A stretch of 62,140 nt of DNA, counting the filler, from Guillardia theta CCMP2712 (lineage: Eukaryota > Protista > Cryptophyta): assembly GCF_000315625.1 (NCBI RefSeq). It is 6 parts of 6 records of this genome, joined end to end, with 100 filler letters (N's around TTAATTAATTAA, not from the genome) between each part and the next. Parts side by side here need not be neighbours in the genome. Positions count along the whole stretch, not along the records: positions 57,204 to 59,693 come from NW_005434453.1; 5 more parts are not named here. The stretch is one strand, 5' to 3'. The notes under the pieces were generated by a model. The model was not told the DNA's origin. It did not search any database and worked only from the letters and a program-made list of their open reading frames with translations. Positions 12,910 through 59,793 of the stretch are shown here, in pieces. The position numbers and the translations under genes are program-made. Every line of letters begins with the position of its first letter. The first letter of the stretch is position 1.

Positions 12910-14045
12910 CTATAGTGACCAGTCCTCCTCGCACGCTCCGTTCGTTACCACCACGTCCTCCTCCCTCCCTCCCTCCCTCCCTCCCACCACCACGTCCTCC
13001 CTCCTCCTCCTCCTCCTCCTCCTCCCCCTCCTCCTCGTCTCCACTCCTACCTCAAGCACGTAGTAGTCCAACGGCTTTCCTACTCCTGCCTCCGGGTCGC
13101 AGAACAGCTGAATCCTCACGTCCCTTGCTACTCCTCCTGGGCACTGCTCCCCATCGAAGTAGTAGAGCTCTACCCCAGCTGCCGGCTCCGTCTCGTCGAT
13201 CAGCTCCCACTCCCTGCTCGCCGTCAGCATCGATCTGACCGACCGCAACAGGTCCTCACATTCCCCTCATCTGGCCAAGCCAGAAACAGTCCCCTTCCTT
13301 GCTCACCTACAGCGTCTTCGTGTCAGCATCATCCCCATCCTCCTCCTCCTCCTGCTCCTGCTCCTGCTCCTCTTCCTGCTCCCGCTCCCTCCTTCCCTTC
13401 CCTTCCTTCCCCTGCTCCTCCTCCTGCTTCTCCTCTCCCTCCCCCTGCCCTGCCCTCTCCTCCTCTTCCTCGGGCCTCTACCTCGTACGCTGGAGCGCTG
13501 ATGGATTTCCTGAGGGAGACACATGCCTCGGGGACATTGTTGGCATCCCCGCAGATGTTGAAGTAGTACCTAGCAGGTGAGATGAGCAACAATACATCTC
13601 CCTCCAAGCATGAGCTCAGACTGACATGTTTCCATTCCTGTCGTCGGCATACCAGTCTCGCTCGCTGCGAGAACCAGCGTCAGCTACGTCGGACATGGCA
13701 TGTGGCAGGGAGGGGAGGGGAGGAAAGGGAGAGGTCGTTCCTACCCTGGTGGCCTCCGCAACCCTGACAGGTCGAAGGAGTATCCGCTCGGGAATGTGTG
13801 ACTGAAATCGACGTGTTAGGGCACCATCCCCAGCAACCTCCTCTCCTCTCTCCTCTCCCCTCCCCTCCTCCCCGCTCGCCGCTCGCCGCTCACGGTCTCT
13901 CCTCTGCCCTTCCTCCCCCGCCCTCTCCCTTCTTGTCCGCATGCACAGCCTGCCAACAGTCCACTCCTTCTCACCTGCAGGTCTGTGTCCTCACGAGGGT
14001 GGAAGCCTCCAAGACGAGCAGCACAAGCAGCCCACACCTGACCAT
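12910..14045 (-). CDS. Signal-peptide protein with a mannose-6-phosphate receptor homology (MRH) domain, M6PR/ATG27/MRL1-like; runs into a gap
   Basis: Leader MVRCGLLVLLVLEASTLV. Exons YYFNICGDANNVPEAC and GVELYYFDGEQCPGGVARDVRIQLFCDP match MRH motifs (YxxNxC, YxxGxxC, RxxxIxxxCD). Confidence 0.75.
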
Positions 14046-57064: not shown

Positions 57065-57204
57065 GTGAAAATGAGTGCAGGAGGAGGAGGAGGAGGGAGG
57101 AGGNNNNNNNNNNNNNNNNNNNNNNNNNNNNNNNNNNNNNNNNNNNNTTAATTAATTAANNNNNNNNNNNNNNNNNNNNNNNNNNNNNNNNNNNNNNNNN
57201 NNNA

Positions 57205-58692
57205 AGGAGGTCCGGTGGTCACCTGGCAGAACAAGAGCACGCGCGAGTGGTTGGCATGAAGTTTCTTCAGCAGCTGATCCAGCGCTTTCATCTTTCCCGC
57301 GTTGTCCACCAGGTGCTCCCCCTCGACATAGGGGGGTCCAGGTTCCTGCCCCTCGAAGAGGTAGGGGTGGTTGCAGGCTTTTCTCAGCTGCATGACGATG
57401 TTGAGCAGCTGGGAACGGTCGCCGCCCTTGCCGCTGATGGCTGAAAGGTCCTTCTTGAGGATGTGGCTGTACAGGTTGCGCTGCATGCTGGAGAGTGGAA
57501 TGTAGACGTTGATCTCTTGCTTCGGAAGCAAGCTTCTCTCCACATCCCTCTTGAGCCTTCTGAGCATGAACGGGCCCAGGATCCCCTGCAGGTTAACAGT
57601 GACGGCGGCAGCGTCAGTCGTACTGTCCAGCCTGAACAGGTTCTCGAAGTCCTGAGAGGAGTGGAACTCGTCTGGGAGGACGAAGTTCAGCAGGGCCCAT
57701 AGCTCGTGGACGTTGTTCTGCAGCGGAGTCCCGGTGATCAGCAGCCTCCCGCAAGTCTTCAGCTCCCTGGCCACCTGGGCCAGCTGAGAATCCTCGTTCT
57801 TGATCCTGTGCGCCTCGTCGATCGCCACGTACCTCCACCTGACCCTGCAGATCGCATGCTTGTGCCGCAGGAACACTTCGTAGCTCGTCAACAGGATGTC
57901 GAACCTCCCAGCTGCCATCTCCGACGAGATCAGCTCCTCCCTCTCCTGCGCCGTCCCCTGCAGGGCCAGCAGCCTGGCCGTTGGGATCCACTTCTGAACC
58001 TCCAGCTGCCAGTTCCCCATGGTCGACTTGGGGACTAGCAGGAGGAAAGGGCCGGACGTCCCACACTGCATCATCAGGCCCAGGAACGCCACAGTCTGCA
58101 CCGTCTTTCCCAGCCCCATCTCATCTGCCAGGATGCCTCCGATGCCGTTGCAGTACAGCGAGGCCAGCCAATTCAGCCCATCGAGCTGGTAGTCCCTGAG
58201 CTGACCTCCTCGCAGGATCTCGGGCTGAGAGTGGATAGGGAGAAGCTCGCTCATCCTCGCCGCGATCGACTCGATGTGCCTCGAGCCGTCGCTGAGCTTC
58301 GATGCCTGCTCCTTTAGCAGCGCCTCGTCCTCCTCCCTCTCCGTCAGCCTCCCCGGCCGTTGCCGGTCCTTGGATCTCGACTCCCTCCCCTTCTGCCGCA
58401 GGTACGTCCCGATCGACGTCTCAGTCTCGATGAAGAACTTCCTCCTTGCCGCCAAGTCCCGCTGCTCATGCAGGAACCCTATCTCTTGCTTGTGCGGATC
58501 CTGAGGGGATTTCCCTCCTCCCCGCAGCCGGATCGAGCCCTGGCAGATCGTTCTCCGCTCCCATCGCCTGCCCTGGCTGTTCCAGCATGCAGAGCAAGTT
58601 TCCTGCGCGGAGAGGCAAGGAGGAAGGTACTGCGCGATGAGCCTCGGCAGCACCACAAGAAACACGATCCCCAGCACCCGCCCTGCAGCCAT
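57205..58692 (-). CDS. ISWI-like SNF2-family chromatin-remodelling ATPase (N-terminal part; continues into gap)
   Basis: GGQLRDYQLDGLNWL, GILADEMGLGKT, IDEAHRIKNE, RLLITGTPLQNN..ELWALLNF, LLNIVMQLRKACNHPYLF and EPGPPY..GEHLV. Confidence 0.95.
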
Positions 58693-59793
58693 CCCCTCCA
58701 GCTAACAACGTCAGAGCCTCGTCTCTACGAGAGCCTCAGCACCTCCCCGTCATCAGCAGCTAACATCCACGTGTCTCACGGCACTTGCGATGTTCAGCGA
58801 CAGCAAGCTGCTCAGGAGAGGCTTCGTACTGGCTTTCATCGACTTGCTGTCCCCCCGTCCCAAGAACCCTGTCCTCAACTACTGGACAGAACCTAAGGCG
58901 CCAGCCCTCAATGGCCCGCCATGCTCGCAGAGCACGGACCGAAGTCAGAGATCTCGGCGACTTCCGACCTCTGGAGGATTTTTGATCATTCGAACAATCT
59001 GCAGGACAAATCATCCATCAAAACTTGGAATAACACAGTGGAACAGGCAGCAAATTTCAAACTGAACGCTCCTCTAGTTGTGGGCCTTTCACATCCTAGC
59101 ATCTCTTGAGACAGCTACGGCCCTTCTCAGCTCATCATATCTTATGCTTTCATACGGTACAAGATCTCTTCCTCTCCTCTCTCCTCAGCTCATCATATCT
59201 TGTGCCAACCCTTCTCCCCGCCATGTGACCAACGTATCCCGAAAAGTTCCATCCCTATCTCCTCGCTTCCATCCCTTCCTCATCCCGTCTCACTCTCTTC
59301 TTACTTAATCTGCATCCTCTGCCACACATCCATTCGCCTTCTTCTCACTCTCATAGATCGGCTCCCTACATCCATCTTCCCCCGCGTACCCTTCTTTCTC
59401 CTCGCTTCCTCTTTCCCCACTCTCCTCCTCATCCCCAACCTCCCCACTCATCTTACAAAACCCACTCATCTCCTTCATCATAGCTTCCCTCCCTTTCTTG
59501 CCCTCTCCTCCACCTCTCCTCTCCTCTCCTCTCCTCTCCTCTCCTCTCCTCTCCTCTCCTCTCCCCTCCCCTCCTCTCCTCCACCTCTCCTCTCCTCTCC
59601 TCTCCTCTCCTCCTCCTCTCCCCTCCTCTCCTCTCCTCTTCCCTCCTCGCCCCTTCCCTCCCCTCCTCCCTCCCTCTTTCGATGCATGCCGGANNNNNNN
59701 NNNNNNNNNNNNNNNNNNNNNNNNNNNNNNNNNNNNNTTAATTAATTAANNNNNNNNNNNNNNNNNNNNNNNNNNNNNNNNNNNNNNNNNNNN

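Follow-up and report, generated by a model that had tools for sequence, protein, structure and literature searches.

A 2.5-kb contig of the cryptophyte Guillardia theta CCMP2712, located at positions 57204-59693 of the window (the whole stretch of 62,140 nucleotides of DNA analyzed here) and bounded by an assembly gap at both ends, was found to carry exon 1 of an ISWI ATPase in an open reading frame (ORF) on the minus strand (58692..57223). The predicted protein starts with a leader that resembles a signal peptide followed by a transit peptide and that ends in IRLRGG, a sequence close to the ubiquitin tail. The overall reading that we favor, and for which we consider the chances to be good, is that this gene encodes a second ISWI of G. 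theta that would be routed by its leader to the nucleomorph. The features of this gene given below are all on the minus strand.

When the region 57205-58692 was translated, 496 codons were found to be open from the ATG at 58692 to the contig edge. Coding exon 1 of this divergent ISWI paralogue comprises 490 of them (Met1-Gln490; 57223..58692), as its end was set by the continuation ...LLFCQ|MTRMLD of the public protein model, with the GTGACC donor directly adjoining it (57223/57222). The start of intron 1 (GTGACC..., 57204..57222) is interrupted by the assembly gap, and the next exon follows from position 14036 of scaffold locus L001 (JH993185.1), which contains the whole gene of the model. 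This model, GUITHDRAFT_158980, is a 447-residue protein of Guillardia theta CCMP2712 with 100% identity to the ORF, in agreement with the premise of the first-pass annotation that the organism is nucleomorph-bearing. It begins at Met147 and lacks the leader as well as the ppHSA and AutoN motifs described below. The model crosses several assembly gaps, its tail is mis-spliced, and the HAND-SANT-SLIDE part lies in unannotated L001 exons.

The Pfam family SNF2-rel_dom (PF00176) matched residues 168-445 with an E value of 4e-91, which places ATPase lobe 1 at 57358..58191 with its GLGKT (Walker A), DEAH and LLITGTPLQNN motifs intact. In a PDB search, the E values for ISWI, ISW1 and SNF2h structures (5jxr, 6jyl and 8v4y) were 1e-118 to 1e-124, with alignments starting at approximately residue 102, compared to 1e-84 or weaker for Snf2/Brg1, DDM1, CHD1 and INO80. 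Upstream of the ATPase lobe, a ppHSA-like motif was recognized by eye against canonical ISWI N-termini at residues 81-98 (AARRKFFIETETSIGTYL; 58399..58452). An AutoN-like motif is present at residues 110-128 (RLTEREEDEALLKE; 58309..58365), where it was aligned to RRTEAEEDAELLKD of 5jxr and to 6jyl; in the PDB alignment, AutoN reads RLTEREEDEALLK in the G. theta ORF and RRTEAEEDAELLK in 5jxr. In the downstream L001 exons, outside the contig, Helicase_C was matched with an E value of 7e-15 and SLIDE with an E value of 2.6e-21 (L001:16589-16822). A SANT-like exon gave a weak match only (Myb, E value 0.037), and HAND was not found in the L001 exons, among which assembly gaps intervene. Here and for the Baffinella locus described below, exons were analyzed singly and no joined spliced model was used in any search. 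Because Helicase_C and SLIDE are present in the downstream exons, the gene is a full ISWI and not a fragment, and the earlier assignment to the ISWI/SNF2 remodelers holds. Like the canonical ISWIs (6jyl, 8v4y and 5jxr, which are yeast ISW1, human SNF2h and Myceliophthora ISWI, respectively, and the G. theta protein GUITHDRAFT_83481), the protein has the core motifs, AutoN, ppHSA, Helicase_C and SLIDE. Unlike them, it has 59 extra N-terminal residues and a hydrophobic start in place of an acidic N-terminus.

The translated sequence opens with MAAGRVLGIVFLVVLPRLIA, followed by an Arg-rich stretch up to IRLRGG (residues 54-59). The signal-peptide-like segment, residues 1-20 (58633..58692), consists of an n-region MAAGR, an 11-residue h-region, Pro16 and a c-region RLIA. 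The mean Kyte-Doolittle hydropathy in an 11-residue window was 3.05 at residues 6-16, with Arg5 before the window and Pro16 at its end. In 359 Met-starting ISWI-family models the median of this value was 0.12 and the 95th percentile 1.32, and one other model reached 3.05. The probability of such a hydrophobic start was approximately 3e-4 under a Markov null built on the local sequence; under a cruder null made of all ATG-initiated ORFs of this repeat-rich locus, 6% were as hydrophobic. Candidate signal-peptidase sites following the -3/-1 rule were, after residue 20, LIA|Q (first site) and, after residue 29 (58606), LSA|Q, both with Leu at -3, a small residue at -1 and Gln at +1. Hand sums with the ASAFind 2 matrix for the periplastid compartment (PPC) were approximately 2.7 and 2.5 for the two sites; they are dominated by Ala at -1, and nothing was drawn from them.

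The transit-peptide-like segment, residues 21-59 (58516..58632), is non-conserved and was delimited by composition, with residues 30-62 containing 7 Arg/Lys, 2 acidic and 6 Ser/Thr residues. The ubiquitin-tail-like IRLRGG (58516..58533) forms the leader end, 21 residues before the AARR of the ppHSA-like motif and with 30 or 39 residues between the signal-peptidase site and GG, depending on which site is taken. The hydrophobic, signal-peptide-like start that had been claimed for this protein was thus recovered as a family outlier, and IRLRGG was located exactly at 58533..58516, after the Arg-rich stretch, as the first-pass annotation had it. A degenerate ubiquitin domain within the leader was considered and rejected, since the leader is too short and there is no Pfam match: no ubiquitin family was found by Pfam in the 496 residues, and the 30-39 residues that precede the tail are too few for a ubiquitin fold.

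The leader must be translated, because conserved motifs lie upstream of any internal Met, a stop codon precedes Met1 and an assembled contig is colinear through the region. The first in-frame Met after Met1 is Met147, the ppHSA-like and AutoN motifs are at residues 81-128, and an in-frame TAG is found four codons 5' of Met1; Met1 is the sole AUG able to yield a protein with the conserved N-terminal motifs. A 3461-nt contig of run X1 (depth 93) has its start at 58951 and stays colinear, without any joint, past 58050. Its depth was 93 on the gene, compared to 0 at 59010-59345 and approximately 3 further upstream, a pattern that fits RNA, and its length fits exon 1 plus the rest of the ISWI coding sequence. 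A transcript start downstream of the leader had been named in the first-pass annotation as refuting its reading; in this contig, guessed to be RNA, the start was upstream of Met1. A contig from another study, X2, extends to 58617. In a raw RNA run, X14, no reads were obtained from the 6% of it that was covered. The GC content at third codon positions was 0.73 in the leader, 0.57 in the 5' untranslated region (UTR) and 0.83-0.88 in the core. An unspliced intron or a UTR left open by chance was also considered as an explanation of the leader; it was rejected because translation of the conserved motifs has to begin upstream of them, where Met1 is the only in-frame AUG, and because the contigs run colinear. 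The start of the public model at Met147 is a truncation because it cuts off the conserved motifs.

The 5' untranslated mRNA leader (58693..58951) was delimited by the start of the X1 contig and contains upstream ATGs (uATGs) at 58922, 58839, 58766 and 58753. The corresponding upstream ORFs are 4-28 codons long and suggest a regulated or low translation from Met1; an extra ATG at 58989 probably lies before the transcript start. Codons 6-30 form an in-frame 75-nt GT...AG segment (58603..58677) with a pyrimidine tract and CAG at its end, and it is inside this segment that the X2 contig stops. Splicing of 58677-58603 would remove exactly the hydrophobic core. The segment was unspliced in the X1 and X2 contigs seen; such contigs drop rare variants and do not show RNA ends. 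If the segment is ever spliced, the signal peptide would be lost and dual targeting would become possible.

The ending of the ISWI leader was found to recur in leaders of G. theta proteins of the PPC. The ASAFind 2 supplement (PMC12136025) contains the full sequences of G. theta PPC reference proteins. In this set, the junctions read MLRLRGG|GKEKHH in EF-1alpha, where the normal N-terminus of this protein forms the mature part, ALRLRGG|VDGE in 14-3-3, PLRLRGG|FRGD in RRM1, ALRLRGG|GLPY in CyP and CMRLRGG|NVAM in Cdc48, with an xLRGG form in Ubc8 (IPLRGG|ANPT) and ugg-t (MSLRGG|AGSD). Five of these leaders, those of EF-1alpha, 14-3-3, RRM1, CyP and Ubc8, were reportedly expressed by Gould et al. 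in 2006 as green fluorescent protein (GFP) fusions in Phaeodactylum, where they are said to have localized to the PPC. The same ending was found in a thioredoxin (XP_005829422; FLRLRGG|GGVQ) and an FBPase-like protein (XP_005839318; ALRLRGG|SAAT), both signal-peptide-bearing and with a non-aromatic +1 residue. In every case the motif stood after the signal peptide and before the conserved domain, 13-48 residues past the predicted signal-peptidase site; it was absent from the reference-set members sDTC, NTRC, GLRX2 and hemE. The likeness extends beyond GG, as IRLRGG is followed by GKS in ISWI and LRLRGG by GKE in EF-1alpha. The claim of a ubiquitin-tail mimic at the leader end is therefore sustained by the recurrence of xRLRGG or xLRGG at the leader ends of G. 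theta PPC proteins, the GFP-tested ones included.

With usual residue frequencies, approximately 0.001 occurrences of RLRGG would be expected in approximately 1000 leader positions, compared to five observed in the 15 leaders of the set. When residues 21-110 of the ISWI were shuffled, RLRGG appeared in 0.08% of the shuffles, and the six-frame background of R[LIVM]RGG was approximately 3-5e-5 per codon at both loci, that of G. theta and that of Baffinella. Because of the recurrence in the G. theta PPC leaders and in a candidate exon of Baffinella, the sequences argue that RLRGG in the ISWI leader is not there by chance, and a chance origin was rejected on the same grounds. An xRLRGG at the leader end is an empirical trait of the G. 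theta reference set and not a published criterion. No pairing of RLRGG or LRGG with Guillardia, periplastid or transit peptide was found in the searchable literature, which did not cover Gould 2006. Among the G. theta proteins, the periplastid ubiquitin gt_155024 is built of a signal peptide followed by a transit-like stretch, then a divergent ubiquitin-like domain with CLRVRGG at its end, and finally a single canonical ubiquitin; the RLRGG with which other leaders end may have its evolutionary source here.

In Baffinella frigidus, an ORF upstream of the orthologue and on the same strand (L002:1509-1871, where L002 is MU646411.1) has a hydrophobic start followed by a Ser/Ala/Gly/His-rich stretch. 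This ORF holds CLRMRGG and CLRLRGG, the latter followed by RKS, a basic run and a phase-0 GT donor. The ppHSA-like motif recurs in the Baffinella exon copies as AARRRFIREETEVLQNF; these copies start in phase 0 after CAG, and the spacing from RLRGG to AARR would be 20 residues in Baffinella compared to 21 in G. theta. Approximately 0.006 occurrences of R[LIVM]RGG would be expected by background in an ORF of this kind, and Pfam found no ubiquitin family in it. By these features of its sequence, L002:1509-1871 is a candidate for the first exon of the Baffinella orthologue. At L002 5400-21000, exons of the orthologue are present as two to five slightly different tandem copies (three of ppHSA, three of AutoN and several of the ATPase exons), which represent either an assembly artifact or a real local duplication, and the annotated Baffinella model carries junk inserts. 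No other orthologue with its N-terminus was found in homologue, representative, word and metagenome searches. A metagenome scan with paralogue-specific peptides gave one contig, L003 (Ga0209550_10101914), with 70% identity at 85-342; the contig begins 84 nt before the match and does not cover the N-terminus.

Full-length relatives were sought over region 1-496 with L001:9563-12832 as the query, in which exon 1 was read into the gap as X. The second G. theta ISWI, GUITHDRAFT_83481 (P0127), is 57% identical to the leader-bearing protein and has no leader. It differs little from a Hanusia protein and falls into a group with proteins of Cryptomonas, Hemiselmis, Teleaulax and MMETSP; in this group, the full-length canonical cryptophyte ISWIs (Hanusia, Cryptomonas, Hemiselmis) have acidic, non-hydrophobic N-termini with no leader. 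In a maximum-likelihood tree built from 74 trimmed sequences over 338 columns, a sample with no named red alga, all cryptophyte ISWIs including the leader gene formed one clade of 19 rows (SH-aLRT 99). The leader gene paired with the Baffinella frigidus protein (SH-aLRT 99; 63% identity), and this pair was separate from both the canonical clade and a third type. The branch of the leader gene had approximately twice the length of the canonical copy's branch. Members of the cryptophyte clade share GQEPGPP, compared to GAEPG in 224 other family members. The third cryptophyte type, P0024 of Rhodomonas salina and P0098 of a JGI metagenome, is sister to the canonical clade (SH-aLRT 95 for this join and 99 for the pair) and has short, polar N-termini that lack a leader. 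Because it is placed within the single cryptophyte ISWI clade, the leader-bearing gene is, as judged from the tree, an old cryptophyte paralogue. The phylogenetic check called for by the first-pass annotation thus stood in part: the paralogue was placed among cryptophyte ISWIs, and an endosymbiont (red-algal) origin was unsupported in this sample.

In PPC proteins of cryptophytes and diatoms, a signal peptide precedes a transit-like peptide, and the +1 residue of the latter is neither aromatic nor Leu (PMC3101018, PMC12136025); these proteins pass the second membrane via the ubiquitin-dependent SELMA machinery (PMC3101018). Compared to these traits, the ISWI leader has a signal-peptide-like start, an N-terminal extension and Gln at +1, acidic residues are tolerated, and a leaderless second copy exists. 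The bipartite leader that had been proposed for it agrees with the published PPC criteria (PMC3101018, PMC5443833), the signal-peptide part having been judged by a hydrophobicity proxy. Among the four H2A genes of G. theta, one encodes a protein with a leader of this kind, and that protein, reported as fast-evolving, was localized to the nucleomorph by antibody (PMC5443833). Like nucleomorph H2A, the ISWI described here is a chromatin protein that is fast-evolving, with one paralogue bearing a signal-peptide-like start plus a transit-like extension with a non-aromatic +1 residue and with the others leaderless and assigned to the host nucleus. In contrast to H2A, a structural histone that is absent from the nucleomorph genome and was localized by antibody, ISWI is an ATP-dependent remodeler and was placed from sequence. 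It also differs from the cytosol-type housekeeping proteins of the PPC reference set in that it would need a further step into the nucleomorph. No paper linking ISWI and the nucleomorph was found in the searchable literature.

As a computational candidate, the protein is probably an ISWI targeted to the PPC and nucleomorph, for which the following route may be proposed by analogy with the G. theta proteins whose leaders were placed in the PPC as GFP fusions in a diatom. Residues 1-20 (or 1-29) would act as a signal peptide for entry into the endoplasmic reticulum (ER) surrounding the complex plastid, and in the transit-like stretch up to residue 59 the Gln at +1 would direct SELMA passage and retention in the PPC and not import into the stroma. 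The leader would probably be removed at or near IRLRGG, and the mature ISWI would begin approximately 20 residues before ppHSA. The mature enzyme would then enter the nucleomorph, the sole chromatin of the compartment, and slide or space nucleosomes; the canonical, leaderless GUITHDRAFT_83481 would serve the host nucleus. Import into the nucleomorph and a role in nucleosome spacing are proposed because a remodeler has no other substrate in the PPC. The identity of the gene, the need to translate its leader, the features of this leader, the paralogy and the recurrence of the motif were shown by the analysis; how the protein is imported, the removal of its leader and a function in the nucleomorph are what we infer.

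In ubiquitin fusions, the RLRGG junction is the site cut by deubiquitinating enzymes (DUBs). The ISWI leader resembles ubiquitin fusion precursors (polyubiquitin, ubiquitin-ribosomal fusions and gt_155024) in having ...RLRGG directly before the next protein, and differs from them in having the tail only, with no ubiquitin fold; most DUBs require this fold. The presence of RLRGG at the junction between leader and mature protein, most tellingly in EF-1alpha, suggests a processing site as in ubiquitin fusions. Cleavage of the ISWI leader after GG is nevertheless a tentative assumption, with somewhat more to be said against it than for it. The same doubt applies to a fuller scheme that might be drawn from it, in which cryptophyte PPC leaders would be three-part, a PPC peptidase of the ubiquitin-specific type would cut after GG, once SELMA had been passed, as the missing presequence peptidase, and ISWI would mature at Gly60 and enter the nucleomorph as a spacing enzyme. 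The ptDUP clade, found in other SELMA-bearing groups, is absent from cryptophytes (PMC12412216).

Several points weigh against a nucleomorph-targeted ISWI processed at its leader end. Residues 1-54 had no relative among 1.84 billion representatives, in which ISWI matches started only from query residue 55, and a word search with the first 160 residues gave no match and no short-protein relative of residues 1-54. Targeting peptides are usually without detectable relatives. The search of 1.84 billion representatives also gave no closer orthologue, clustering at 50% identity being one that merges ISWIs. The leader paralogue is not of visibly red-algal origin in the tree without a named red alga. 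Run X1 is RNA by guess only, the four uATGs in the UTR of approximately 260 nt would lower the use of Met1, and a minor isoform spliced at 58677-58603 is compatible with the contigs. In Baffinella, the frame of the candidate exon meets no stop over 80 codons upstream and has a second ATG 44 codons ahead, and the join of this exon to the ISWI gene is putative in a messy assembly with duplicated exons and gaps. Finally, as the ptDUP clade is absent from cryptophytes, an enzyme cutting after GG would not be assignable to it.

Alternatively, the leader might be translated and yet not be a working targeting signal, the protein being a second ISWI of the host nucleus whose N-terminus is odd and fast-evolving and whose RLRGG is incidental. 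The lack of relatives of residues 1-54 and the derivation of the paralogue from the cryptophyte ISWI clade are in keeping with such a protein, as is the fact that ISWI paralogues with differing N-termini are common, a third leaderless type (P0024/P0098) among them. However, the hydrophobic start is an extreme outlier in the family and would commit a nuclear protein to the ER, and RLRGG is found at the same place in the G. theta PPC leaders and in the Baffinella candidate exon; we regard a purely host-nuclear protein as improbable. A different doubt concerns whether the protein of the cell has the hydrophobic start at all, since a downstream transcription start site, non-AUG initiation or splicing of 58677-58603 could remove it, or both forms could coexist and give dual targeting to nucleus and nucleomorph. 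The segment does have GT, a long pyrimidine tract, CAG and a length that is a multiple of three; four uATGs stand ahead of Met1, the public model begins at Met147, and contigs of the kind seen would miss rare variants and RNA ends. Yet no joints were seen in the X1 and X2 contigs, which run colinear through the segment or into it, and the donor of the segment, GTGCTG, is a weaker one than GTGACC and GTGAGG, the two real donors seen in the gene. Moreover, Met1 is the sole in-frame AUG before ppHSA and AutoN, and the public model cuts these conserved motifs. A protein devoid of the hydrophobic start, alone or beside the full form, was accordingly given a low probability. It is very improbable that the hydrophobic segment serves as a signal anchor, or as a plain signal for secretion, that leaves the protein in the ER, nuclear envelope or secretory path: a nucleosome remodeler has no substrate in the ER lumen, an 11-residue h-region followed by Pro is signal-peptide-like and too short to span a membrane, and the following segment and RLRGG match the PPC leaders. 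What speaks for an anchor is that hydrophobicity was the only measure and that, with Arg17 interrupting the stretch, a 19-residue window still averages a Kyte-Doolittle value of 2.0.

Elsewhere in the contig, a (CCTCT) microsatellite was found at 59502-59677 (35 copies, 85% matches), at the contig edge adjoining the assembly gap.

With respect to the favored reading of a second ISWI routed to the nucleomorph, Marinov and Lynch (PMC4822330) stated that the proteins imported into the nucleomorph are not known and that in silico predictions are unreliable. The gene described here is a concrete candidate for an imported remodeler and bears on the question of which host-encoded factors run nucleomorph chromatin. 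Nucleus-encoded, nucleomorph-targeted chromatin proteins are a known kind, to which its sequence would newly add an ISWI candidate; it was missed by earlier screens because the public model was cut at Met147 by assembly gaps. The recurrent ubiquitin-tail-like leader ends are a more far-reaching lead than the single ISWI gene. If the motif is a processing or recognition site, it would link the SELMA ubiquitin machinery to presequence maturation, and RLRGG would, if this is true, be a simple tag in the sequence by which the proteome of the PPC and nucleomorph, poorly recovered by current predictors, could be catalogued.

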